A DNA stretch of 64,000 nt from Calcarisporiella thermophila CBS 279.70 (lineage: Eukaryota > Fungi > Calcarisporiellomycota), in assembly GCF_041956535.1 (NCBI RefSeq), contig NW_027192221.1:1-64000 (forward strand), given 5' to 3'. Positions 2,378-42,978 of this stretch are shown here, in pieces. Under the pieces are notes generated by a model that saw nothing but the letters and a program-made list of their open reading frames with translations, ran no database searches and was not told the DNA's origin. Numbering within the stretch: position 1 is the first letter of the stretch; each line of letters begins with the position of its first letter. The translations under genes and the position numbers were made by a program.

Positions 2378-4783
2378 TTACGCCTTGGTTGCCCTCCAGA
2401 ACGAGGCGTACATGTTCACCCTATCCAGGCTGATGTCGCTGCCTTGCTCGCGGATCCCCATCGGCTCGACGGTGAAGCCGTTCTTCTCGAAGATGCGGTT
2501 ATACCAGGGGTAACGGGCGGCGGAGCGCCAGTACACGGCGCCGCCCGGCTTAATGGTGCGGGCGACGCTTGCGATTTCGGCCTCGGCGGCGGGCTCGTCG
2601 AACCAGTCCATGTGGTCCATCAGCACGGCCTTGGTCACAGACTCCGCGGCCAGGTTGTTGAGCACGTTGTTGATGCTGTCGGTGTGCAGACGGAACGCGT
2701 CGAGCGCACCGCTCGTCTTCAGCTCGTGGAAGCCCTTCTCGGTGAGGTAGGAGGGGCACGACTGGCGGGAGTACTTCTGCTGCAGGCAGAGGTAGTAGAA
2801 GTACTGGTCGTTGCGGAACAGGGAGCGGCCGATGATGGGGTCGAGAGTGTCCTCGATGTACTGCTGGGCGGAGCCCTCGCTCAGGAACATATTCATCTGG
2901 TTGACGGGAACGCCGAGCGCGTTCCAGAAGAAGACGGGGTTGCTCAGCATCCCCACGAACCACTTGGCCAAGAGGGTGGGGCGGATGCGGGTCCTCCAGA
3001 TGCGCTTCTGCTCCTCGACGGTGGCGGCGTGGCAGAGGGCGTCGCAGTCCTTGCGCAGCCCCATCACTCGCACGATGGTGTCGACGATGCGCAACGCGAG
3101 GCCGGAGTAGCCGGAGAGGTAGAATTTGGAGCGGAAGGAGGAGGCGTTGTGCGACCAGAACTGGTACGCGTGGGAGCTCATGCTGGGGCTGAGCTGGGAG
3201 TCCAGGAGCGCCTTGAAGCCGGGGTGCTTGCCGTCGCCGAACATCTTCCAGAAGTCCTCGTACTCGAGGTTCTTGAGGCCGGAGAGCTTGAGCTCCATCA
3301 GATGGCCCTGGCACGGGTTGATGTCCACGCAGTGGATGCGCTTGGGGCGGCCCTTGAGGGCGTACTCGAGCGCGTTATCGCCGGCACTGGTGATCACGAA
3401 CATGACGTCGTCGGGCTTGAGGTCCAGCACCTCGAGATCCACGCGGGGGTCCTCCCACGTGAACGCGTAGATGTACGAGCGGAACTGGGTGTGGCAGGGG
3501 AGCGAGGGGTCGTACGGCAGGCGCCACGAGTTGGCCTGGTAGTGGAAGCTGGAGGGGGGGAGCGCGGGGGCGCTCGCGACCAAGGCGGCCGACTCCTCCC
3601 TGTCGGCGATCTCGTTGACGACCCTGCGTTCGCGCTGGCACCCGATCCACACGTAGTAGGGGATGCGCACAAGGCCGGGGATGACGAAGTGGTTGCGGGC
3701 GTTGAGGCTCTTGAGCGTCCCGAACTTGTACTCGAGGTAGTCGCGGCGGCCGGGGGCGAGGTTGATGTGGTCGAAGTCGAACCAGATTTGCCAGAAGAAG
3801 CGGTTGAACCAGCCCACGCGACGGTTCTGCGAGCCCGACATCTTCTCGGCCGGGGAGGCCGCGTTGCCGGAGACATAGAAGTCGGCCACGCCCACCACGC
3901 CCTGTGGGTGGAGCAGGGAGGCGATGCGGTCGACGACAGGGAAGAACGTGTCGATCATGGAGAGAGAGTAGGACAGGGTGACCAGCCCGATGTTGCCGTC
4001 GGGGGCGTCGAGGTCCGGCAGGTGGAAGGAGGCGGCGTCGTCGCACAGGACTACGACATTCTTCCAGCCTTTCTTCTCGAATCGCTCGCGCGCAACCTTG
4101 CAGAGCGAAGGGCATAGGTCGACCAGGTAGACGCGATGGAATTTCTCGATTGAAAAGTATTCGTTCATGCGCTCAATATTCCATCCTAACCAGGAGATGA
4201 AAAAAAAAAAGTCAGTGGCTAGCTCGAATGTCCACATTGCAGATGAGGCGACTGACCGGTTCCGCCGCCGATATCGATCCAGATGAGCTTTTCAGGGGCG
4301 ATGCCCTCCTCAATCTGATGCTTCAGCTGAGCAGCGCAGAGCCTGAGCATCGTCTTGCGACCCCGTAGGAGGCCACCGCGGGTGGCATCGTAGACTAGAG
4401 AGAGTGAAGGAAGGGGGGGGGATGGGTGAGATGAGGCATGATGAATTCGACGGTGAATGCCACTTACCTTCAGCCTGGTCCTGGTAGAACGATTCCAGCC
4501 GGGTTTGCTGGTTGACGCCGTGGTTGCCCAGCGGCTTCAGGAAGCATGAGTAGATGAATTTGAGGGGCGCCTTGAGCTGGTCCTTGGCGACGATGTAGGC
4601 GACGAGGGATGCGGCGAGGGACAGCAAGAATGCAAGCCCGTACTTGCTGGATGGGAGCCATCCCTCTAGTAATGTGGAGCGCAGAGCCAAGATGCTCAGC
4701 ACCACTGAGACGGGCACAAGCCAGGCGCGGAAGTTGAGTTCCTGGAAAGCCTCAGCGTACGATTGTCCGTGACCAAGACCCAT
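2378..4783 (-). CDS. BTA1: Betaine lipid (DGTS) synthase, BtaB methyltransferase + BtaA/DUF3419 fusion, 3 exons
   Basis: N-terminal TM segments; LESFYQDQA, WIDIGGGTGWNIE (SAM motif across intron), VYLVDLCPSL, YIYAFTWEDPRVD, ITSAGDNAL, VDINPCQGHL, MDHMDWF, WRSAA, terminal DRVNMYASFW. Confidence 0.92.
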
Positions 4784-5000: not shown

Positions 5001-5951
5001 CATCTGGGCAAGGCTGGCCCGGAGAGGGGACAGAGATTTGGTTGTTTTAGATTCGGTTGGGGTGTGGGTGCAGTCCCTGGCCTGCGGCCAATTGCTCATC
5101 ACACATGCGGTTGGCTTGGAGTTTAACAGGCCGGATCCAATTGATAAAGAGATATCCCTGCTCGTTGGGGGCGAGGCCGGCCGTGTGTGCCTCTCCCCCC
5201 CCTGTCGCCGATTGCCAAGTAGCTGCTGACATGTGAAAACCTGCCCTCGCCCCGCTTTGGCCGCTCTGCTCGCCCAGCTCCGCCGCCCCCTCCTAGCGCC
5301 CCTCGTTGGCTCAGCTCCTGGCTCGCCCCCTCGCCCGAAATCCCAGGTGTGGCTTGCGCGCGGGCGGTCCTTGCTCCCGCGAGCCTCGCCAGGCTGCTCG
5401 CGGCCGAATCGCCGTGGGGAGCGCAAGGGGGATCCAGCAGGGTTGGCGCCTGCCCATATCGAGGAGCGCGGCCAAATCAAGGTTAAGGATGATACCACAC
5501 CTCCTCATGCACATGGCAGGAGCTTGCGGGTGCCGGCTGCAGAGGCCTCGAGGGGAAAAGTCGAGAATTCCTTCGTAGTGTGACGTTGCACGCACAATAC
5601 TTGCAAGCCGTAGGAGTCTTGCTGGATTTGGCGTGGTGCGCATTCGGGGGTGGAGGCCGCGCGTCAGCGTCGCACATAGCTATTTCGCTGTAGTTTAATT
5701 TTTCGTTTGTTTTAGTCGGGCAGGCCCAATATTCGGGAGGAGATTTTCGCTGGATCCATTTTCCCCGTGGAGGAGATAAGCATTCGCCTCTCGGATAATC
5801 CAAGCCCAAGCCACCCAAGGTCCCCATTGACAGCGTCAGACGCCTAAGGAGCCCGCCTCCGAGTCATCCTGCTTCGAACCCAGAAGAGGCATCGAACGAT
5901 CTGCCAAGGGCTGATTCCTGGACCCAAAAACAAAATTCCCCCCTTTTCCAA

Positions 5952-7062
5952 ATGGCGCTTCGGGTATGTATTGGACATTCGAGTGGGCTGCTTGTCCATT
6001 GATTTCTCACGCTGACTCCCTCCATGTCGAACCCGGGTGGCAAACTGCAGTACTTGACCCAGAAACTCTCGCAGGAAATCGACAAAGAGCTCATGTCCCC
6101 GCAAGGGGGCTTCTGTGTTGAGCAGCTCATGGAGCTGGGTACGCGCTAGCATTCGGATGCGATGGCGGTTCTCCTTGAGCTAATGCCACTCTATTTGCTT
6201 AGCCGGTTTGTCGGTTGCTCAAGCGGTCACGCGAGTCTATTCCAAGGACCAGTACTCCCGAGTCCTCGTTTGCGTGGGCCCCGGAAACAATGGTGGCGAT
6301 GGTAATTGGTCCACTTGATCTTTTATGTTTTCTGCTGACATCTAAGCCTTGCCCCCCCTCCCCCTGCCTTTGCTTCCCTCTTTTTTCTCTTCAAGGGCTT
6401 GTGGCCGCCAGGCACTTGCTCCATTTCGGCTACAAGCCAAAGATATACTTGCCGAAGGAGCCCAGCAAGGATCTCTACAAGGGGCTGGTGACCCAATGCA
6501 AGAACCTCCATATCCCGTTCACCAAAGACATTGCTTCTCAAATAGGCGACAGTGATCTCGTACTGGATGCCATCTTTGGTAGGCTTGCCCCTTGGCGCAC
6601 TCTCCCCTCTTACCTCTTCTTTTACTAGGCTAATGGCCGATGCTTGGATAGGCTTTGGCTTCTCGGGTGATGTCCGTGCTCCCTACGACGAGGCCGTCAA
6701 GTGTCTCAAACAAAACAGCCTTCCCATCGTGAGCATCGATTGCCCGTCGGGCTGGGACGTGGAGCACGGGAACGCGGAGGAGAAGAGCTTCGAGCCGGAA
6801 ATGCTCATCTCGCTCACCGCGCCGAAGCTGTGCGCTAAACACTTCCGAGGGCGCTACCACTTCCTCGGCGGCCGATTTGTCCCCCCGTAGTTATCTGATT
6901 TAGGGGTGACTCTTCCCCCAAAAACCAAGGGGCTTGGCGAAATTAACCGTCTTTTTTTTCCTTGTCTCGCTCGATTCTAGGGAGTTCGAGAAAAAATATG
7001 AATTGAATCTGCCACAGTACCCCGGCACGGATCAATGCGTCGATATCTCCTCGCGGCTGTAA
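5952..7062 (+). CDS. NNR1: NAD(P)H-hydrate epimerase (YjeF_N), multi-exon, C-terminal SRL
   Basis: Spliced MALR|[81 protein letters not shown]; ends [17 protein letters not shown]. Confidence 0.92.
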
Positions 7063-7430
7063 TTTCAGACGAGTGGAGGCGAACGTGTTCCGCCGTCGTC
7101 GACCTGGCCTCGTAAGGCCCTCTCCCCCCTCCGTTAGGTATGGAGAATTTCCAAGCAAACAAAGTGTCAATAAAATTCGCTCGCTCTCTCGACGTCATGC
7201 TCATTCTTAGTCAAAATCGCTTATTATTAATCAAGTGGGTATTAAAAATCTGGAATGCCTAGTTTGGAAGGGAATTCGCACCTCCAAGCACGCACCAATC
7301 GCATGCATGTGATATTTAGAGTCGACTTCCCGAGGAAATTTTTTCCTCTCTCAACTCAAATACAGAATAGAAGAGGAAAGAAAAGCCAGGTTAAAAAAAT
7401 AATAAAATAGACCCAAAGCCCATTCTCCCT

Positions 7431-8511
7431 ATGACCATAGCCCAAGAATCCGTTCTCGACCGTCTCCCCTCCACCTCCACCTCCGCCGCCACCCCCCCCT
7501 CTTCCTCCTCTGAATCCCATTCTCCCGAGGAATCGGAAGATTTTTTCCCCCCCATCGTATGTCGCAAGGGTTGTCGCTATCATCGATCCCACATCCTCTC
7601 CCCGATGGATTTACTCCCGCCCTCTCCCCTCACCTACACTCCCCCTGCATCGCCCCCACCCAGCTCTTCACATCTCATTGAAAAGTCGCACAATGGTCAT
7701 CTAAGAACATCGATTCGGGTTGAGAGCCAAGCCCGGGCTCGCATCCCAACCGCCGAGTTCGGCGAATTCAGTCTCTATCTCTACCACAATACGCTGGATG
7801 ACAAGGAGCATCTCGCGATCGTGTATGGCGATATCCGGAGTAGGAGCCTGGAGGCACCTAGGCCCGGTGAAACCGAGAGGGATCGCATCGTTCGGGGGGC
7901 TAGCCCCCAGCCCATCGAGCCGCTGACCAGCCCCGAAGCTCCGCTGGTCAGGATCCATTCCGAGTGTTTCACGGGCGAAACCGTCCATTCCGCACGCTGT
8001 GACTGCGGCGAGCAGCTGGATGAGGCGATGCGAGTGATGGCCAAGGAGGGAAAGGGAGTGGTGGTGTATCTGCGCCAGGAAGGAAGGGGCATCGGATTGC
8101 TAGAAAAACTAAAGTAAGGCTGCTCTTCTTGGATGGGTTGACAAGACGGAGTCCCTCTAACGCTTGTTCTCTCCACCCCCTTCCTCTAGGGCCTATAATA
8201 TCCAGGACCTCGGCTACGACACGCTCAGCGCCAATCTTCTCCTCAACCACCCCGCCGATGCGCGCAGCTACGAGATGGCCACCGCCATCCTCGACGACCT
8301 CGGCATCCACGCCGTTCGCCTGCTTACCAACAACCCGGACAAAATCGCCCAGGTGGAGGCGGATGGCCTGCGCGTCGTCGAGCGAGTTCCCATGGTGCCC
8401 AAGGTCTGGGAGAAGAAGGGAGCCGGCGTATTGCGCGAACTAGACAAGTATTTGAAGGTCAAGGTAGAAAGGATGGGCCATATCCTAGACTTGCCGTCCA
8501 ACTTGAATTGA
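7431..8511 (+). CDS. RIB1: GTP cyclohydrolase II (riboflavin biosynthesis), one intron ~8114-8189
   Basis: [42 protein letters not shown]|[24 protein letters not shown]. Confidence 0.95.
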
Positions 8512-8928
8512 TTTAGAAGTGCTTCTTTGTTACATTCTTCATTTGTTTTTTATTTGTTCCTGGAACTCTTTGACGCTTTTTATTTCGTTATTTTTTTTTT
8601 CTTTGTCGCCTTCCCCATTGTGATTCGCTTGAACATATCTTGTATTAAAGTCTCTAACTCGTGAAACCGTAAACCATAAAAGGTGGAAAACAAAAAAAAC
8701 AATGTATTATTTTTATTCACACTTCCATTCCCATTAGCATTAAAGTGGAATGGAAAAAGAAATGAAAAAAAACTCTAAGCTCGCTTGAACCATTTGATAT
8801 CCATAAAGAACAAGAAAGAGTAAAAAAAAATTATAAGAAGACAAGAGGTTTTGCGGGGAGGAAGAGGAGAAAAAAAAGGGGGAAACAAATAGAATAAAGC
8901 ACACGCGAATGAAAGAGAGCGAAGGGGA

Positions 8929-9847
8929 TCATGGCCTGCGGGGCGGCGGCGGAGGGGACATCAACGAGGGTAAGGTTTCCCCGTAGAGAGGGCCGGATCT
9001 CTGTTGCAGCGGAGACATGCCCATATTGAGGTTCCGGGACCGACCCTCGGGGAGGCCTGGTTCTGTGGCACTCCGCACTCTTGAACTTCTCCAGCCAGCA
9101 TCCAGGGTGTGGGGGGATAACCGGTAGCCCAGGAGCCCCTCATCCCCTCCCCTGGATGCTGGCGGTGCTGTGCCCGGCACCTGGGGCTGGCGTCCGAGAG
9201 GGATAGGCGAGCAAAGGGTGAGCATGATCTCGGCCGCATCCTCCTCGATCGTCGAGGAGGCGCGCCCGGGCGGCGAAGGGGTACGAGGGGATCTGAGCTC
9301 GGACAGCTTGGGGGATCGGAACGACTCGGTGCTTCTGCCGGTACTCAGCCCGCCTCGCCCGTTGCCCATGCCTCCCCCCACCGCCTTTGCTCGCGGTCTA
9401 TTTTCCCGGTGACGAAGCGGTTCGAGTGGACTCCGTGGGGCATGTCGCAGGGCCCGATACGCGTGATATCTTCGGACTGGCGGTGCACTGTAGGCCTGGC
9501 GCAACATGGGGGGAGGTTGTGATGGGGGATGGGAGAACACGCGGTCCTCGAGCGCTTCAAGATTGAGCTGCTCCCAACCGCGTTGGGCCTTGTATTTGGC
9601 AAATGACAGACGCGTTCTTAGGCGCTGGAGAGTCTTTTGATAGGATGGAAATGGTTAACGGGGGTACACACGGAGGAAGCGACGCGACAATGAATTGATT
9701 AAGCTCCCCTCTCTTTTTGAGAAGGAGGGAGGGGGGAGGGATACTTACTTCAGAGACATCCGATGATTGCGGTGATTTGATCTCGGCTGACGACGCGGAT
9801 GCAGGCGGTTTATCTGGCCGAGAATTGTGTGATGTGCCTTCCTCCAT
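8929..9847 (-). CDS. Whi5/Nrm1-domain G1/S transcriptional repressor-like protein, intron 9634-9748
   Basis: After splicing (GAA|gtaagt...aaag|ACT) reads LQRLRTRLSFAKYKAQRGWEQLNLEALE, matching the Whi5 domain; the rest is disordered with many SP/TP CDK-type sites. Confidence 0.75.
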
Positions 9848-10164
9848 CTCAACTGATTCATAGAAGAGCGTGTTTGGAAAGCGATTAGAAAAAAATAACT
9901 CCAGTCAGTATCGCAATCCCCAGCAAACAGGCGCGTCAGGAATAATCAACAAGAGATAGCCTACTATATAGGTAGAATTTGCTAGCAGCTAAGCCAACAC
10001 AATACACATCTAATGCCGAGTGAAGAATGAGAAGGGCAGATCGGAATTCTGGAATGCAAGCCTAGCCAAGTTTAATTAACTGCCAATGGTACAGGATAGA
10101 AAAAAGACAGAGAAGGCGTATGGAAGCAAGAGTTGAGAGCTAGTGGGAGGGAGAAGGGAAAAGG

Positions 10165-10246
10165 CGCGTCACTCACCCGTTGCAAAATTATTTCTTACGC
10201 GAACCCCCGCCTAAATTTTCACAGTCGCGCTCTCTGAGAAACGCGT
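10165..10246. promoter_or_regulatory. Cluster of CGCG-core MCB/SCB-like elements upstream of the Whi5/Nrm1-like gene
   Basis: CGCGT 10165, ACGCGAA 10197, CGCG 10226, ACGCGT 10241, next to a putative 5'UTR intron (10176 to 9853). Confidence 0.4.
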
Positions 10247-11498
10247 AAAAACGAAAAATAAGCCAACGCCATGATCCTGTTATCAGCTTGGTTTTTTTTT
10301 TTTTCAGGGAGGGGGATGGGAGGAGTTTTATTCCTCGAGAGCGGCGATGGATTGTTTATTTTTTCTCCTCTTCTTCCTTCTCTCTCTCTATCTGGATGCC
10401 AATCCAGAAAAGAATCCCTTGCTATCCCTACTGTGGATATCCATGCAAAGCTGATGTGGTAGACGTGCTCAAGGGGGGACATAGCCATCCACGACTCTCC
10501 TAGGTCGCCCTCCCCCTCCTTTTCCTCGCGATCTTTCATCCGCTCGCCTCCCTTCACGGACGCATGACTCACTAGAGAACGGAATATTTCCAATCATCAT
10601 CCATTTCCCAAGTCTATCTGATTTAGAGTTTGATTGGTCGAAGTGAGCATACAAATTAAACGGATAGATCACGATCAATTACTTCAAACACGGCCAATTT
10701 CAAGCACCTTGATGATTCTCATCTAGGTTTGTTTATTATCTATAGCTTTTTTTCCCGCTTCTCTCTCACACTTGACACAGAAAGAACACTAGAACAGGGC
10801 AATTCGAGATCGATTATATAACCGGTAGATCGCACCTCTCTATCACCCCCTTCCAAGACTACGGTGCTTGAAACACAAGTCTTGCTCTTGTTCTTAATGA
10901 AATCCCCTCACTGTGGGAGGAACTCGGGCGGCCGCCTCTACATCGGGGCTTCGAACCGGATTCCACCGGGTCAATTTTTGCCCGCCAGTTTCTCAACCAA
11001 GCTTCATTTTTCAGAGCAAAGTGGAAACCCTCATCATTTGCGGCCCCCTTTCATCTGCCAGATTCAATAGAGCGCTCGATTTTGTTGACGAACCCACCCC
11101 ATTTCCAATGGGTTTGCCATACTTGTCTAAACACAGCGTCTTGGCCTCGTGCAGCCCCCCTCCGTCCCCCCTCTTACACAGTGACAAATTGAGCTATTAT
11201 TACTTTGCACACCTTCTCCTCTCTTTCCGACTTTCTCTTTTCCTTTCCTTCTTTCTCCTCCACGGTAGGCCATTTCAAGGGACTAGAAACTGAGCCTGAT
11301 GGGCTCCTACTTAGTAATACGCATTTCTTTCTAGAAACTTATCACCGGAATTCACCAAATTGGATGCGGGCCAAGCCGCATTTTTATTTTCCTTTTCATC
11401 CTTAGAGTTTTCGTGGACTTTTCTCATAAGAAACCTCAGTTCGTTGGTATCTTTTCCCAATTATCCCAGCTCTTTTTCATTGTTCTCCTTCGAAACGA

Positions 11499-12642
11499 AT
11501 GCGCATAGTCGACCATCACCCATCTGATCATAATAGGGGCGCAAGATGGAGATTTTCTCCGCGCTTTTCGGTCACCACCTTATTCTTGGTATTCCTTCTC
11601 GCCATTCTTCCCAATTGCATGATTTTAGCAGAAGCTAGATGCACGGCAAGTAAGTACACATCTGTCGTTTTGCTCGGCATCGGGGTACTAAAATTGTGGG
11701 GTATATATAGGTTGTTACTCGGATTCTAACAATCGGGCTTGTCTTAGCGGAGTCTGTCGAGAATTTCCTCCCAACCAGCCCCCATTCGACGAGTGCGGCA
11801 CTAACCGATGTCCTCCAGGATCATATTGTTATACTCGTGGCTCGTTCAAAAGCTGCGTGGAGTTCTCCTTGAGAAACGAATTTTGCTTTTCCAATTTATC
11901 CGTACAGACTTGCCTCAGTCCGTACCAGTGTCGCGGATCCATTTGCGACTCCAGTGAAGTTTTTAATAACTCAGGCCCAAGTCCTCTTAGAAGCCCGCTG
12001 CTCTTCTTGTTTCTTCTCGCCATTTTGGTGCTCTTTATTGGAATTGCAGTGAGAGTATTTATTAAGAGGCGCGCCGCCGCTTTGGCGGCCCAAAATCCGG
12101 GCGCCTATGGGCCGCAAACGGCAGGGTTTTCGGGGCCCTGGCCTAATCAGCAGCAGCCCATGTACGGTAATATGCCACCTCCTCAGGGCCAGCAGCAGCC
12201 TTCGAGAATCTACGATCCAGAGAACCCCACTGGAGAGCCCTTACCCGTCTACCAAAGCGACGCACCCCCCAAATACGACGACATCATGATGCAAAACATG
12301 AATTCGGCTAATCAGGCCAATGGTAGCAATGCGAATGGTCAAGCCCCGGCCGGGAACCTGCAGCCGGCCAATGCAACCTATCCGCCGCCGACCTCGCCGC
12401 CCCCTCAGCAGCCCCCTGCGGCCTCCAATCTGTACCCGCCCCCTACTACTTACCCGCCCCCTACTACTTACCCGCCCCCCAGCTCGCCTCCTCCAGCGAA
12501 TCCTCCCCCTCCATCAGACAGCCTCCCCTATCCCAACCTGACTACCCATCCGACCTATGCCCCCCCTCCCCATCCCCCTCCGGCCCCACTATCGATGCCT
12601 GAGCCGACCCATGCCCCTAATCGCCCCCCACCTCCCCAATAA
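11499..12642 (+). CDS. Type I membrane protein: signal peptide, 12-Cys ectodomain, TM helix, Pro-rich tail with PY motifs
   Basis: Intron 11650-11710 joins the signal-peptide exon in frame to SCYSDSNNRACLSGVC...; TM LLFLFLLAILVLFIGIAV followed by KRR; tail has LPVY and PPKY. Confidence 0.75.
12435..12480 (+). repeat. Coding tandem 18-nt repeat (YPPPTT units)
   Basis: cccgccccctactactta repeated about 2.5 times. Confidence 0.7.
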
Positions 12643-36600: not shown

Positions 36601-38114
36601 CATGACGACCGCCCCCCTGAGCTCGCCCACGTCGCTCACGATACAATAGCCAAAGTGTGCTTGGTGGATGAAAAACCATTTGCGGGTCCACTGGTAACGT
36701 TTTCCGGAGGAAGTCCGATGAAAGAGATATCCTTGCTTAATGGGAAGCACGTTTGTAGAGCTGCGCGAAAAAGCAGGCGAGCTAGAAGAAGCTGGTAGCG
36801 AAATAGTACTTGCATTTGCATATGCCAATAGGGAGCGGTTTGGGCGGGCTCTAAAAATAGCATCCTAGCAGAAGAAGGTGAGGTTATAAAAAAAATGAGA
36901 AAATGCCTTAAAATGTAAAATGTAATTAGGCTAACCTCCTCGAGTTTTCCCTTCATGTTCCTTATTTTGCTCAAATACAAGTCACATACAGGTCGACTCT
37001 GAATTTGGAAAGTAAGATAGGGGTTATGGCTAGAGTTGCATTTTGGGCCATATTTGAATCTTACCTCTTGAAGCCATTTTCTATAGCTTTCGCGTTGTTC
37101 GCTTAGGCGTTTGTAGACCTCGAATGAGTTTTCGTGATATTCGTATTGCGCACCAAGTGCCTTAAGAAACTATGGGTGCAATAAGAGAGTGACAACAATT
37201 AAAATCGAGCGGGAGACATCAATTAAACATGACAAACATACCTGCTCTACAAGCATATAGTCCAATGAAGACCTAATACCAGATTTGATTAGTGCCAAAA
37301 GATATAACTCAGCAGAAATTTCGAAAATGAAAGTTATTCACTTGAACCGCGAAATTTTATAAGCATAGTCCGAACTTTGACGGATGTAGCTTTTGCGTAT
37401 TTCGAAAAGCTGGAATGCGTCCTCTCTTAGTGCGCTAGCCTCCTTGGTCTTTCCCTGTGCAAAATATCGATTCAATGCCAATTCATACTTTTCTGTCAGC
37501 TTTTCAAAGTTTTTTCTAAATTCTTTGAGCTCTTTTATATCGTGTTTAAGAAGATGTTGCAGGGGATTGATTAGGTATTCTTCTAGATCACTCGCCTATA
37601 ATTACGAATAAAGATCTTACGTGAGGATCATCTATAGAAATTAATCCGCAGAAGAATATACGTACCAATTTGACTCGAAAGCTGACTGCAGTTTGTAAAG
37701 TTTCAGAGAAAATCCTAACAAGATCTGCGCTGAAATCAGGATCTATTACAAACAGTAATGGATTAGGAACGTCTTGTGACGCGGAAAGAATAAAAATGCT
37801 AACTTATAACGGCCTCGTCCACATCGGAAGGAATAGTTAATCTTCCAAGTTGCATAGAAAAACTATTCAATTCTACTCGTAAATGGTGAGGAGAAATGTC
37901 GCTTAATTTCATCTACTGATTCCAACTTACTCAAAAGCTCATCGACGGCACTACGAAGCGTTTTGCAATAATTGTCTAACCACTTCTCCAGTTTGTCCAG
38001 CTCATCCTCAAAATGGTGAGCATTAGCTCGGAAAGATGGCGAGTCAAGCACAGCATCTTCTATTGTGATGATGTTCGCGGTAGGCGCGGTTGGCTCCGCG
38101 AGTGAGAGAGACAT
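33670..38114 (-). CDS. Sip3/Lam1-like BAR-PH-GRAM-StARkin(VASt)-TM lipid transfer protein
   Basis: AVLDSPSFRAN (BAR start), IKQGYLF..WTRKWFF..DRRFCFEV..LQAETEEELQDW (PH), GRIFLT..YFYS (GRAM-like), SARALFELMFGD..LPYADSF (VASt), C-terminal TM. Confidence 0.85.
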
Positions 38115-38701: not shown

Positions 38702-41700
38702 ATGACAACGACATCGCCCATCCTAACTCACATCTCAGCTGCTCGACAGCTTCTCTCTCAGCTCCGGCAAAGCGTCGAGCACACACTAGAATCATTAATT
38801 TCTCCAAACGATATCAATCAGCTTAGCGAGAAACGAGAAGAACTGACACGATTGTCAGATGCAATATCACAGGAGTTAACGTGTATCGAAGAGAATGGGC
38901 AGCTTAGTAAGGAAAACGGTGAGTCTGATGGGGGCGATCAGGCAGGGAACATGCTTGAGAAGCAGGAACGATCATCGAATGTACGTATTTTGATTAGCTA
39001 TGTTGAACATTGAGTTAGTCTCACGAGTTTTTTCTACAATCACCAGGATTCACCCGAAAAATCTGCCATAATTATGGGTATCATGGAGAAGGATAATGCC
39101 TCGAACTGGCAATTGACTTCGATTAATCATAAGACTCTTCGATTATACATGTACGACTACTGCACCAAATGCAAGCTGACCTCCACAGCAAATACACTTA
39201 AAGCAGAAGCAAATATACCCACCGATCACGAGGTACCCATAGAAGCACCCGAAGGTTTTCTCTTCGAGTGGTGGACAGTTTTTTGGGATTTGTTCTCAGT
39301 ACGGAACACAAAAGCAGGGAGCAGAGATGCTCAGACTTATTTTGAGGTAATTGGACTCATCGCTTTTTATTTATTTTTGGAAGTATACTAAACCGCTCTA
39401 TTTTTTTAATAGGCGAGTCAACTTCGTGCGCAACGTGAACGAGTTCAACAACAGACGATGCAGCAAAATATGCATCGACTCTTCCTTCAAGCGCAGCAGC
39501 AAATATTACAGCAGCAGCAGCAGCAACAGCAACAGCAGCAACAGCAACAAACTCAACAACAACAGCACCAGGCTCAACAAGAGCAACAGCACCAACAACA
39601 GCCGCCACATCAGCAAGCACAGACACAACCTCGCCAACCGCAGCAGGCTCAGCAGCCGTTAACTCCTCAGATGCAGCAAATACCTCAACCACCACAGCGA
39701 TCCGACAGCGTCTCATCCCAGGGAAGCGCACAGGTTGCCTCCACCCTTCCTGCTCAGGGAAACCCGAATGCATCTCCTGCCTTTTCTCCTCCGTCCATGA
39801 TGTCACGGCCAAACGAACAAGGTACGACGCAGGCTGCTAACGGTGATATAATGCCACACACGATGACAACACCACAAATACCTCAGCAAAATGGCTATAT
39901 GATTAACCCTCAGCTTGCCCAAGCCTTACAGGCCGCCGGATTAGGTGGCCGTGACCCATCAACTCTAACCCCAGAAGAGAATGTAAGTCCTTGGCAAAAG
40001 TGCTAATATTTGGAGTCAAACTTGACAACTTTTTCATATATTAGCAAGCACTCATGAAAAAAATAAATCAACAAAACATGCAGAATATGCAGAATATGCA
40101 AATCCGGCCTGGGTAAGTTCCCTTCGCTAGAATAATATTTATTGTCTAGACTTGACATTTTTTGAAACAATACAGGAGCATGAATCCTCAGCAGTATCAG
40201 CGGTTTATGCAGCAGCAGGCAGCTATACAACGGGCGCAGGCGCAGGCGCTAGCGCAAGCACAATCCCAAACGTCTCCTCATGTTCAAGCTGCTCAGAATT
40301 CCATGTCGCCCAATATTCCAGTAAATAATAACACAAACCACTTGTACCTTCCACACTTAGTTTTAATGTGATCTACTATTTTTAGAAACGCCGTGCCGAC
40401 CTCGTAGCTTCAGATGCAACCGTCTCTCCTCCCGAAGCAAAACGGCAACGCAACAATTCGGGCGGATATTCTGTTGCAATGCCGGGTACCAATAGCCCTG
40501 CCCCAATTCCGCCTAACGGACCCTCAACTCCTGGTGTTCCGATGAGCCCAGGCGTTCCTGGAACTCCTGGCACACCAGGCATGCCACCAAATGCTATGCA
40601 GGCATTCATGGGAGATCGTAAGTATCTTTTTTTTTTACAAGCTCGAGGTCATTTTAATGCCAATATTTAAATTTGCTTCTATTTTATTTTAGCTAATATG
40701 ATGAATGCTTCAAATCAACACATGCTCTCCAAGGGATTCCCTCCGAATATTGCACAACAGGTAATTATCATTATTCTCTGTCTATGGTAATGGATTTGTC
40801 TAACAATTTCCGCAGCAACAATACTTGATGCAACAACAGCTTCACATGAGACGAATGATGATGGCAAACCAACAACGAATGAGCCCGCAGATACAACAAG
40901 CCGCCGGAATAGTTCCAACTAATGCACCGGGCATTCCGGTTATGCCGAATCAGGTTAATGCACAAGCTATTGCTGATTACCAGGCCATGCTTCAACGTCA
41001 TCAGCAACAGCAGCGGCTTCAGCAACAGCAGCACCTCGTTAATATGCAAAGCCCTACAGGAATGCTACCACCTCAACAACAGCAGCATTTACTAATGATG
41101 CAGCAACAAGCCTTGGCATCACAGCAAGGCACAATGGACGGAGGTGGAAATCCACAGTCACCACAGGCAATGCGCGATCGCCAAGGCTCAAATCCTGTTG
41201 TCACGCCCAACGCAAGAATTAATGATGGCAATCAAACTCCAGGTGGTAATGGGATACCCCCTAACTCGGCCGCCCCAAATGAACGGTTAGCTCAAATGGC
41301 TAAGCAGCAAATGATGGCAAGACAACAGCAAGCGCAGCAGTTGATGCAGCAGCAACAGCAACAAATTCTACAGCAGCAACAGCAGATGTTCCAACAGCAG
41401 CAGATGCAACAGATGCAGCATATGCAGCAACAGCAACAGCAACAGCAGCATCAACAGGCTCAGAGACAAGGGCAACAGACAACACGGCAACAAAAGAGTC
41501 CTCCAACGCCACAACAAGGGCACCGAAACTCAATTACTTCCACCCAGAATAGTAGCGGTCAACCTCCGAAAGGCGACCAAATGGATGTGCATCAAGGTGC
41601 AATGGAGAATGGTCCATCTGCTACCTCCACAGCTCAGCAACCTAAGCCTTCCCCTCAAGGAAATGTTAACGCACCCAGGGCACCACATGGGGATGAAAGT

Positions 41701-42978
41701 AATCAGTCAACCGGGGGAGCTGCGATGGCGGCGGCCGGAATGCAAGCTCAAAACAACAATCCTGCACTGCGGCTCTCAACTATCGATGACCTGGATCGGT
41801 TGATGGGCGAAGGCGATTTCTCGGACATGTTTGCAAGTGGAGATGATACCAATGGACTCGGAGACGGTTTAGATTTATTTGGCGGCGGGGGAGGATTTTT
41901 GTCCAATATGACAGGACTGGGTGGCAATGATTTACAGCTGAATACCAGCGGGAGTGAATTGCCACTTCAACTGCACTCTGATCTCTCCGGCCATTCCAAC
42001 AAGGTTAGCGCCTGCGCATTTTCGTATGATGGTCAGTGGCTTGCAAGTGCCGGACTAGACAAAAAAGTTTTGATCTGGTCGGTACAGGAAAAGTCGGTTC
42101 GCTTTACTCTTGAAGGCCACCATTCGCAACAAATTACGGCGGTACGGTTTTCCCCTGATGAACGCTATCTCCTAATTACCGCCTCGCACGATCGAACTAT
42201 TCGTGTTTGGGATCTAGGCGCAGCTATTCGTTCTGGCTCCACAACCGTCAATTGCCTGGCAGTATGCACTGGTAATGCCGAGATCAAGGCTGTGGACTTT
42301 TGCCCAGTAGTGGGCAACGATACTTATTTGTCACTGGACTCGGAAGGTGAGCTCAAGGTTTGGAATGTGAACGCTACCGATTGTGTCAAGACGATCCGCA
42401 TGTCCTCCGTAACGAAGTCCGGATTCCCCGCCAATCCTCTGCGCTTTCATCCACGGTCCAACTCTATTGTTGCGGGGGCATTTGCCACCAATCTTTCGAT
42501 CCTTGACATTAATGCTTGTAAGGATGGAACTATTGCCTCGGACAATCCGAGTACACGCACACTGCCCTCACCCCATCAAAAGAATATTTCGTCGATTGAT
42601 TGGTCCTCGGATGGTGCATTCCTTGTCACGTCCTCAGATGACGTGGTGTGCGTGTGGGAGACAACCCACTACAAGATAGTAAACCAGCATCACCCGCAAG
42701 GGAAGATCAGTAGCTGCGCATTTCTCTCCTCACGACCTGGGGAAGGGCGGGTAGCTTTTGGTGACTATGAAGTAATCTATGTGTGGCAATTTGGTGTGCC
42801 CAATGGTACGGGAGGGGCACAAAATGTTGGAGGGCAGCCTATTCCTGTGCAGCAGGCACAGACGGGTGTAGTAGCAGCACTGGCTTGCGGACCAGCACCT
42901 GGAGAGGAAGGGAGCCTATTGCTGGCAAGCGGGAGCATGGCTAAAACGAATAATATGAAGATTTGGCGGGTCATCTAA
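38702..42978 (+). CDS. LEUNIG-like transcriptional coregulator: LisH/LUFS + Q-rich + WD40, 8 exons
   Basis: LRLYMYDYC..TANTLKAEA..PIEAPEGFLFEWWTVFWDLF (LUFS); polyQ; SPPEAKRQR NLS; WD40 KVSACAFSYDGQWLASAGLDKKVLIW..ITAVRFSP..TASHDRTIRVWD; all seven introns checked in phase. Confidence 0.88.
39490..39600 (+). repeat. CAG/CAA polyglutamine tract in the LUFS-WD40 gene (further tracts ~41320-41460)
   Basis: Mixed CAG/CAA run seen directly. Confidence 0.85.

Follow-up and report, generated by a model that had tools for sequence, protein, structure and literature searches.

The first 64,000 nucleotides of contig NW_027192221.1 from Calcarisporiella thermophila CBS 279.70 (RefSeq assembly GCF_041956535.1), hereafter called the window, carry on the forward strand a gene whose predicted product combines a LUFS domain including LisH, a long glutamine-rich linker and a C-terminal seven-bladed WD40 propeller. 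This design is known from the plant co-regulators LEUNIG (LUG) as well as LEUNIG_HOMOLOG (LUH). As far as can be judged from the sequence, the locus is predicted to be one intron-containing gene, the joining of exon 1 to the LUFS exon being its most tentative part, and it probably represents a fungal member of the LEUNIG/LUH family that was inherited vertically within fungi and not recently taken over from plants. The original prediction, made from the letters of the window, had announced a fungal gene with the full LEUNIG architecture. The architecture is real, all three parts are present and both conserved domains are LEUNIG/LUH-like; however, the gene is not unique, as a paralog exists on contig C4 of the same assembly and orthologs exist in other early-diverging fungi, and the protein begins with an additional module of about 118 residues that is foreign to LEUNIG.

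The gene model is based on scripted splicing and translation, which gave a joined open reading frame (ORF) of 3,825 nt (Table 1); the longest part of it is also found as a mechanically listed ORF of 717 amino acids (aa) at 40825-42978. All seven introns are of the GT-AG type, 55-75 nt long, start with GTAAGT, GTAATT or GTACGT and have a pyrimidine-rich tract ahead of the AG. Their GC content is 24-35% compared to 50% in the coding sequence, and keeping any one of them leads to a stop within 17 codons. Junctions 2, 3, 6 and 7 are crossed by homology to four independently annotated full-length proteins, namely P0001 from the same genome, P0003 from Pilobolus, P0139 from Bifiguratus and P0135 from Synchytrium, while junctions 4 and 5 are bridged partly by the same homology; intron 1 is supported by its conserved position in a small gene described below. 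The whole propeller and the Q-rich linker ahead of it lie in one exon of 720 codons without a stop. The seven donor positions that had been proposed were all exact and pair with AG acceptors. They had been called in-phase, which is correct in that the joined frame stays open, but introns 4 (phase 2) and 6 (phase 1) split codons. The quoted protein strings are present as well, with PEGFLFEWWTVFWDLF at aa 161-176, SPPEAKRQR in the linker and WD repeats from aa 949 onwards. Database and fold searches were run exon by exon, whereas the joined 1,274-aa sequence was used for translation, tblastn and MAFFT alignment.

Table 1. Features of the LUFS-Q-WD40 gene and related genes of C. thermophila (positions without a contig name refer to the window)
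Feature	Position	Strand	Remarks
Whole coding region, LUFS-Q-WD40 gene	38702..42978	+	8 exons, 7 introns, 1,274 aa plus stop; scripted splicing and translation
Exon 1	38702..38980	+	helical N-terminal module, aa 1-93
Intron 1	38981..39046	+	66 nt, GTACGT...CAG, phase 0; read-through reaches a stop after 10 codons
Exon 2	39047..39346	+	tail of N-terminal module to ~39127, then LUFS with LisH ~39128-39346, aa 121-193
Intron 2	39347..39412	+	66 nt, phase 0; homology to P0001, P0139 and P0135 spans the junction
Exon 3	39413..39982	+	linker, poly-Q and Q/P-rich
Linker motif GLGGRDPSTLTPEE	39938..39979	+	aa 369-382; conserved fungal motif
Intron 3	39983..40044	+	62 nt, phase 0
Exon 4	40045..40112	+	Q/N/M-rich
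Intron 4	40113..40175	+	63 nt, phase 2, codon split
Exon 5	40176..40320	+	Q/A-rich
Intron 5	40321..40385	+	65 nt, phase 0
Exon 6	40386..40617	+	basic stretch plus P-rich linker
SPPEAKRQR, putative nuclear localisation signal	40425..40451	+	aa 468-476
Intron 6	40618..40692	+	75 nt, phase 1, codon split; FM[GA]DPNM in common with P0001 over the junction
Exon 7	40693..40760	+	
Intron 7	40761..40815	+	55 nt, phase 0
Exon 8	40816..42978	+	Q-rich linker, then propeller
Exon 8, first part	40816..41937	+	long low-complexity Q-rich linker, same uninterrupted ORF as the propeller
Pre-propeller acidic/aromatic motif DDLDRLMGEGDFSDMF	41785..41832	+	aa 878-893
Seven-bladed WD40 propeller	41938..42975	+	aa 929-1274; blades 1-2 canonical, 3-7 degenerate and family-specific
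C4 paralog P0001	C4:1059500-1068500 (L011)	-	LUFS-Q-WD40
Third LUFS gene	C25 (L012:3051-5290)	+	WD40-less, Flo8-like
Small stand-alone gene	C31:72.4-72.9 kb (L035 ~2913-3383)	-	just beyond the window
LIM_bind gene (Ldb/SEUSS/Mfg1-type)	C6:606626-607378 (L001)		
LIM_bind gene (Ldb/SEUSS/Mfg1-type)	C9:537705-538412 (L002)		
LIM_bind gene (Ldb/SEUSS/Mfg1-type)	C20:355223-355955 (L003/L004)		

The propeller is the part with the clearest kinship. The last exon matches Pfam WD40 with an E value of 3e-29, and an AlphaFold2 model calculated with a plant-plus-fungal alignment as input shows about 28 strands at a mean predicted local distance difference test value (pLDDT) of 92.9 and a predicted TM score (pTM) of 0.91. 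Its fold neighbours in the PDB are only generic seven-bladed, WDR5-like propellers (TM 0.72-0.88, ~23% identity). In BLASTP it aligns with the propeller of plant LUH over 326 aa (28% identity, E 2e-28), collinear in its full length from blade 1 through the C-terminal residue, and the best match of plant LUH in the C. thermophila genome is the window gene, followed by the C4 paralog. Within its own genome, the whole propeller is matched only by this paralog; other WD40 genes match blades 1-2 with at most 42 bits, and a stand-alone member of the propeller subfamily without LUFS was not seen there. The canonical blades 1-2 match every blade of generic or bacterial multi-WD40 proteins, making summed HMMER scores non-discriminating, and kinship was scored instead by single-domain profile scores of blades 3-7. 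With a profile from nine fungal proteins, plant LUG/LUH reached 75-99 bits and chytrid proteins 76-125 bits, compared to at most 25 bits for 16 other WD40 ORFs of the same genome and at most 35 bits for bacterial WD40 proteins; one probable fungal fragment scored 66 bits. Other WD40 proteins align with a combined plant-plus-fungal propeller profile over no more than about 165 positions.

The same relationship was obtained in a maximum likelihood (ML) tree of the propellers (LG+C20+F+G4, 40 rows, 310 columns), in which all LUFS-linked propellers, from plants and fungi alike, group together with 100/100 support at the end of a long stem (0.86). The plants are monophyletic (100/98), with the prasinophyte branching first, then the liverwort and then the angiosperms, and so are the fungi (100/100). 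Chytrids, Mortierellomycetes and Mucorales are each supported clades, Mucoromycotina less so (90/89), and the two Calcarisporiella genes are sisters (100/100), indicating a lineage-specific duplication. A feature search in the Atlas with the Pilobolus ortholog returned plant LEUNIG/LUH for all ten of the ten nearest clusters, which is taken as a lead only. Hence, among the proteins sampled, the blades-3-7 profile and the ML clade place the propeller in the LUG/LUH subfamily. In this sampling, the WD40 part does not group with unrelated families, an outcome that the original prediction had named as speaking against it.

The N-terminal half supports this assignment. Exon 2 shares 46% identity over 70 residues with the LUFS domain of the plant LUG/LUH-type protein P0121 from Orobanche and 56% with the LUFS domain of P0001, and it matches the solved LUFS structures of SSBP2 and Drosophila SSDP (6TYD, 8HIB, 6IWV, 6S9R) with E values of about 1e-7 (7e-8). 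Pfam LisH was found in this exon only below threshold (E 0.001-0.014), therefore the identity to plant LUH and the structure matches are the grounds on which the predicted LisH/LUFS domain is accepted here. It is followed by a glutamine- and proline-rich linker of about 730 residues with a KRQR basic motif and several poly-Q tracts, which agrees with the long Q-rich tracts reported before and contributes to the 202 glutamines among the 1,274 residues of the protein.

Three short segments within the linker are conserved. The first one, GLGGRDPSTLTPEE, follows the pattern GL.G[RK]D..L[TS]..E, which is strictly kept in five of eight other fungal/chytrid LUFS-WD40 proteins and in a looser form in the remaining three. 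The GL.G[RK]D motif is also present in a WD40-less paralog on contig C25 and in 3 of 56 LUFS proteins without WD40, the three being Basidiomycota proteins of the Flo8 type, while it was absent from 12 plant proteins, from 109 other WD40 proteins and from all reversed controls. Second, the predicted string SPPEAKRQR represents a putative nuclear localisation signal (NLS), as assumed already in the original prediction. The S-P-P-x-[AS]-K-R-x-R segment is strongly conserved, being found also in P0001, the C25 paralog, P0297 and P0298, while P0003, P0005 and P0142 have variants of it. The SP site directly before these basic residues could make it a phospho-regulated nuclear import signal. Finally, the acidic/aromatic segment DDLDRLMGEGDFSDMF ahead of the propeller is conserved in P0001, P0003, P0005, P0002, P0139 and the C25 paralog. 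The ending of Basidiomycota Flo8-type proteins (..NFERDFGQWFN..) was considered as a counterpart of this pre-propeller motif (DLDRLM.EGDFSDMF) and rejected, because these proteins scored at most 1.3 bits with a profile of the pre-propeller linker, which is not better than reversed sequences, and the likeness is compositional.

The C. thermophila genome harbors two further LUFS genes. The protein P0001 (1,211 aa, annotated as uncharacterized protein VTP21DRAFT_8712), which was the best relative of the window propeller in the database, maps with 99-100% identity to contig C4 of the same assembly, hence, it is a paralog and not an ortholog of the window gene. Identity between both proteins is 55% across 1,141 aligned residues and amounts to 72% within the propeller; the intron positions differ and the N-terminal module is missing from the C4 paralog. 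The gene on contig C25 encodes the LUFS domain, the GL.GRD and KRQR motifs, Q-rich tracts and the DDLDRLM.EGDFSDMF segment, and ends where the propeller would begin. No remnant of a propeller was found downstream of it (best tblastn E 0.75), where the DNA is AT-rich and non-coding. Thus, a WD40-less form coexists with two full-length forms in one genome.

Residues 1 to about 118 of the window protein form the additional N-terminal module, which is absent from LEUNIG and from the C4 paralog. Exon 1 is 53% identical (E 1e-15) to C31:72637-72873 on the minus strand, a copy located 30 kb off on the same contig. There it serves as exon 1 of a small gene that stands alone, has two exons and codes for a protein of ~133 aa from no known family. 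Both genes have the same Met start and an intron of ~66 nt at the same position, and the second exon of the small gene resembles the first ~27 residues of exon 2 in the window gene. The module gave no match to any Pfam family at E 0.1 or better, including Med27, and an Atlas search with it was uninformative (best score 0.76). These similarities are most simply read as an in-frame fusion, in this copy only, of a duplicated small gene to the front of the LUFS domain. On the other side of the start codon, the first exon of a divergent neighbour was noted on the minus strand (37863-38114), which begins upstream of the proposed ATG at a distance of 588 bp; both genes would thus have in common a promoter region that is short and AT-rich.

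To survey the occurrence of the architecture, a fungal LUFS profile was run exhaustively in HMMER and gave 1,148 clusters at E 1e-3 or better, the best 150 of which were inspected for their domains. A LUFS domain together with a window-like propeller was found in 17 of these 150 clusters. Twelve of them are green-lineage LUG/LUH clusters ranging from angiosperms to the prasinophyte Cymbomonas, and five are fungal, comprising Bifiguratus adelaidae and the chytrids Gonapodya, Synchytrium, Irineochytrium and Quaeritorhiza. The full LUFS-Q-WD40 design also exists in Pilobolus umbonatus. In Linnemannia elongata, the LUFS domain is situated 3.4 kb upstream of the propeller, collinear and on the same strand; the annotation of KV442016.1 (L034) contains three adjacent same-strand models (5669-7871, 7935-9896 and 10001-11869) with gaps of 64 and 105 bp, the first with LUFS (7048-7287), the middle one without Pfam domains and the last with a LUG-type propeller, which probably are one LUFS-Q-WD40 gene divided by annotation. 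The models of Basidiobolus and Rhizopus are N-terminally incomplete, and the Basidiobolus gene is cut by a contig end. Hence, comparison of the predicted proteins shows an architecture common to the window gene, the C4 paralog, Mucoromycota and Chytridiomycota, and its conservation across these fungi argues for vertical inheritance since at least their common ancestor.

About 60 long LUFS proteins without propeller were also found, mostly from Basidiomycota and one of them named 'Transcriptional activator flo8', and others came from Mixia, Eremothecium, Dimargaris and the holozoan Pigoraptor. In line with the statement of the original prediction, the sampled Dikarya LUFS proteins have no WD40 repeats. 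Word-index searches with the LUFS domain of P0001 (14 candidates, 2 matches) and with blades 3-7 (5 matches) returned no Dikarya protein, which is a weak negative due to the insensitivity of this search. The possibility had been raised that the architecture is already documented as common in fungi. It is indeed common in the databases for early-diverging fungi, where the proteins are named 'hypothetical' or 'LisH domain-containing', but no describing paper was found, as literature searches combining LEUNIG with Mucoromycota, chytrids or early-diverging fungi, and LUFS with Flo8 and WD40, yielded no description of such fungal proteins. Some sequences of this survey are unusual. The propeller of the Bifiguratus adelaidae protein P0139 (1,632 aa) ends at residue 1142 and is followed by ~490 residues more, and its UniRef name is alpha-galactosidase; it probably is a merged gene model. 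The plant-like proteins P0122, P0123 and P0126, which belong to the top LUFS matches, have two tandem LUFS domains, in P0123 together with a propeller, representing either local duplications or artefacts of assembly or annotation.

A search for LIM_bind partners of the SEUSS/Mfg1 type had been suggested in the original prediction. Three such loci were found above the Pfam cut-off in the 28-Mb genome, matching the three LUFS genes in number, and the one on C20 encodes an LCCD-like helix. SSBP2/SSDP proteins are partners of LDB1/Chip, and the matched structures reportedly show a LUFS dimer gripping the LCCD helix of LDB1, which is the mode of docking proposed here. When a complex between the LUFS dimer and the LCCD-like C20 exon was predicted, the score was 0.15 against a mark of 0.34, which counts neither way. 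For LUG/LUH of Arabidopsis, the LUFS domain suffices for binding the Ldb-like SEU/SLK proteins, whereas LUFS alone does not repress, hence the Q-rich and WD parts are apparently required for repression, in which histone deacetylase is involved (PMC4015341). Likewise, the LUFS proteins SomA and Flo8 of Aspergillus and yeast bind the LIM-domain-binding proteins PtaB and Mfg1, respectively (PMC4631450). Judged by this homology, the product of the window gene is probably a co-regulator of the LEUNIG/LEUNIG_HOMOLOG type, acting on transcription in the nucleus. In such a scenario, the LUFS domain would dimerise and dock onto one of the three encoded Ldb/SEUSS/Mfg1/PtaB-type adaptors, the adaptor would bridge the protein to DNA-bound transcription factors at promoters, and the Q-rich region and the propeller could then recruit chromatin and Mediator machinery. 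The plant equivalent of the last step would be histone deacetylase-dependent repression, or activation in some contexts.

Several other explanations have to be weighed against a LEUNIG-type co-regulator of fungal descent. Regarding its function, the protein might, in the manner of Flo8/Som1, activate morphogenesis genes downstream of the cyclic AMP-protein kinase A pathway instead of being a corepressor like Gro/Tup1, with the propeller as an added interaction platform. The characterised fungal LUFS proteins Flo8, SomA and MoSom1 are activators working with Mfg1/PtaB, and some Flo8-type proteins of Basidiomycota have the linker motif, too; moreover, plant LUH is also called a coactivator, at least in the title of a work cited by PMC9564828. 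Nevertheless, we consider this rather unlikely, because the Q-rich and WD parts that confer repression in plants are both kept here. Regarding the gene model, the locus might be an artificial assembly of two or three genes, one of them small and N-terminal, another coding for a Flo8-like LUFS-Q protein and a further one for the WD40 part. Exon 1 indeed duplicates a gene that stands alone elsewhere and, if unspliced, runs into a stop after 103 codons, the in-frame ATG at 39074 is a possible start of a shorter protein, the same genome contains a LUFS-Q gene that lacks WD40, and the corresponding region of Linnemannia was divided into three models. Nonetheless, such an artefact is very improbable, given that the Q-rich linker and the entire propeller share the uninterrupted last exon, junctions 2-7 are spanned by homology to the paralog and to the Pilobolus, Bifiguratus and Synchytrium proteins, and there is no space for a promoter or terminator between the parts. 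If exon 1 alone is taken for a neighbouring gene, it is hard to see why its intron has the same place and length as in the stand-alone paralog and why the start of exon 2 still resembles the second exon of the latter; an in-frame fusion fits better.

With respect to its origin, the LEUNIG gene could have been transferred horizontally from the green lineage, either recently from land plants to Mucoromycota or anciently between stem lineages, ahead of the split between chytrids and terrestrial fungi. Such a patchy two-kingdom pattern would be expected from transfer, as among the best 150 LUFS clusters the full architecture is restricted to green plants, algae and fungi, and animals and Dikarya have LUFS without a propeller. 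But the fungal propellers are not nested in plants, both groups being reciprocally monophyletic; trees constrained to unite fungi with embryophytes excluding the prasinophyte (log-likelihood difference ΔlnL 11.5, approximately unbiased test p-AU 0.02) or with angiosperms (ΔlnL 33.4, p-AU 1.3e-5) were rejected. Furthermore, the family is present in Chytridiomycota, Mortierellomycetes, Mucorales, Bifiguratus and Basidiobolus with a branching order that roughly follows the species tree, the introns are of fungal size, and the linker motifs are fungus-specific, being shared with fungal WD40-less LUFS proteins and missing from plants. The rejected constraints, the range from chytrids to Mucorales, the fungal-type introns and the linker motif together rule out a recent plant-to-fungus transfer. 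Hence, of the two origins offered in the original prediction, the data speak against a transfer that started inside the sampled green lineage, whereas ancestral retention holds back to the base of the sampled fungi, with the plant-fungus ancestor lying beyond this sampling. Taking both time frames together, transfer appears quite unlikely; only one that predated both crown groups is conceivable, which at the present sampling would look the same as vertical descent. Alternatively, LUFS and a WD40 propeller may have been fused separately in plants and fungi, so that the likeness is architectural only. LisH plus WD40 designs arose repeatedly, as in TBL1/Sif2, LIS1, TOPLESS and SMU1, the propeller identity to plants is low, and the LUFS tree leaves the fungal domains in a polytomy, all of which could be read in favor of convergence. 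However, the LUFS-linked propellers of the two kingdoms are closest relatives to the exclusion of all other sampled WD40 proteins, there is specific mutual recognition of their degenerate blades 3-7, both propellers align collinearly from blade 1 up to the C-terminal residue, and a stand-alone propeller of the subfamily was not seen in the fungal genome. Because plant and fungal propellers are sister groups, independent fusion is very improbable.

Some observations weigh against a fungal LEUNIG/LUH gene inherited by descent, or at least against parts of this interpretation. The propeller shares only 26-32% identity with plant propellers. In the reverse search with a profile of plant blades 3-7, fungal proteins scored 50-87 bits while bacterial consensus-like repeats reached up to 93 bits, and within the own genome the window gene was best by the modest margin of 61 bits to at most 52 bits for the others. 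The outgroups of the propeller tree were 12 own-genome WD40 genes and 5 bacterial propellers and included no non-LUG plant WD40 families. The LUFS tree, which is based on 76 columns, supports only a clade of Basidiomycota Flo8-type proteins (99/90) and a plant clade (99/96) without the fungal LUFS-WD40 sequences, which are located on the plant side of the 99/90 split as a polytomy. The single transcript is a prediction, and the attachment of exon 1 to the LUFS exon is the least secure part of this gene model. Finally, the relatives are repressors in the case of LUG/LUH or activators in the case of Flo8/SomA, thus either sign of regulation might apply.

Going further back in time, it might be that a module of a LUFS-Q-WD40 protein and a LIM_bind partner existed already in the plant-opisthokont ancestor, and that animal SSDP as well as Flo8/Som1/Mss11 of the Dikarya are derivatives that lost the propeller. 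We put this forward tentatively and would not yet call it probable. The descent of Flo8 and SSDP by truncation is plausible, the circumstantial indications being the WD40-less C25 paralog and the shared fungal linker motif. If true, early-diverging fungi like Calcarisporiella keep both states, namely two full-length genes and a WD40-less paralog. Collectively, the data place the origin of the architecture no later than the root of the sampled fungi, and it may date back to the plant-opisthokont ancestor. A study on LUG/SEU evolution published 2026 in Molecular Biology and Evolution covered only streptophyte algae and land plants and dated LUG/LUH to ~800 million years within the green lineage. 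The searched literature treats LEUNIG/LUH as plant corepressors of the Gro/Tup1 type, and the only fungal LUFS proteins known there are the Flo8/Som1 regulators, which have no propeller and control adhesion, morphogenesis and virulence. These two fields are connected by the full-length LEUNIG-type genes, which range from chytrids to Mucorales and offer a testable scenario for an origin of Flo8 and SSDP through propeller loss. Moreover, genetically tractable Mucorales gain a candidate global co-regulator without prior study, and Calcarisporiella provides a system with full-length and truncated forms in one genome. The finding is an extension of a 'plant' family into fungi, which is moderately surprising; it is not a new kind of system and it is not unique to the window gene.

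Comparison with known systems helps to define the position of this protein. TBL1/TBLR1/Sif2/HOS15 proteins also combine an N-terminal LisH with a C-terminal propeller and act in the context of histone deacetylase corepressors, but they possess an F-box-like segment after LisH, where the window protein has the LUFS extension (FLFEWW..FWD). Tup1/Groucho/TLE proteins follow a similar plan, as they oligomerise by their N-terminus, are Q-rich or disordered in the middle and end in a seven-bladed WD40 propeller, and they are recruited by DNA-binding factors and work with histone deacetylases. Their N-terminal domain is a different one, Tup_N or the Groucho Q-domain gave no Pfam match at E 0.1 or better in any exon, and the window propeller is not specifically related to theirs. 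The LUFS domain of the animal SSDP/SSBP2-4 proteins is recognisably homologous, as seen in the matches to solved structures, whereas these proteins lack a propeller and have a Pro-rich instead of a Q-rich tail, and the window LUFS is closer to plants. Flo8/Som1/SomA/Mss11 are fungal like the window protein and share its LUFS domain and its Q-rich body of low complexity, their LIM_bind partner is Mfg1/PtaB, and some Basidiomycota members carry the GL.G[RK]D motif; unlike the window protein, they have no propeller, and the LUFS domains from Basidiomycota form their own clade. The combination of LUFS and low-complexity body without WD40 that defines Flo8/Som1 is found in the C25 paralog and not in the window gene. 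Plant LUG/LUH differ in their linker, which is two to three times longer in the window protein, and in the absence of the fungal linker motifs GL.GRD..TL..EE and DLDRLM.EGDFSDMF; in addition, blades 3-7 are more degenerate in the window protein, the N-terminal module is special to this copy, and the propellers are similar at the low level given above. Nevertheless, it is LUG/LUH with which the window protein shares the complete order of an N-terminal LUFS domain with LisH, a Q-rich linker and a seven-bladed WD40 propeller reaching to the C-terminus.

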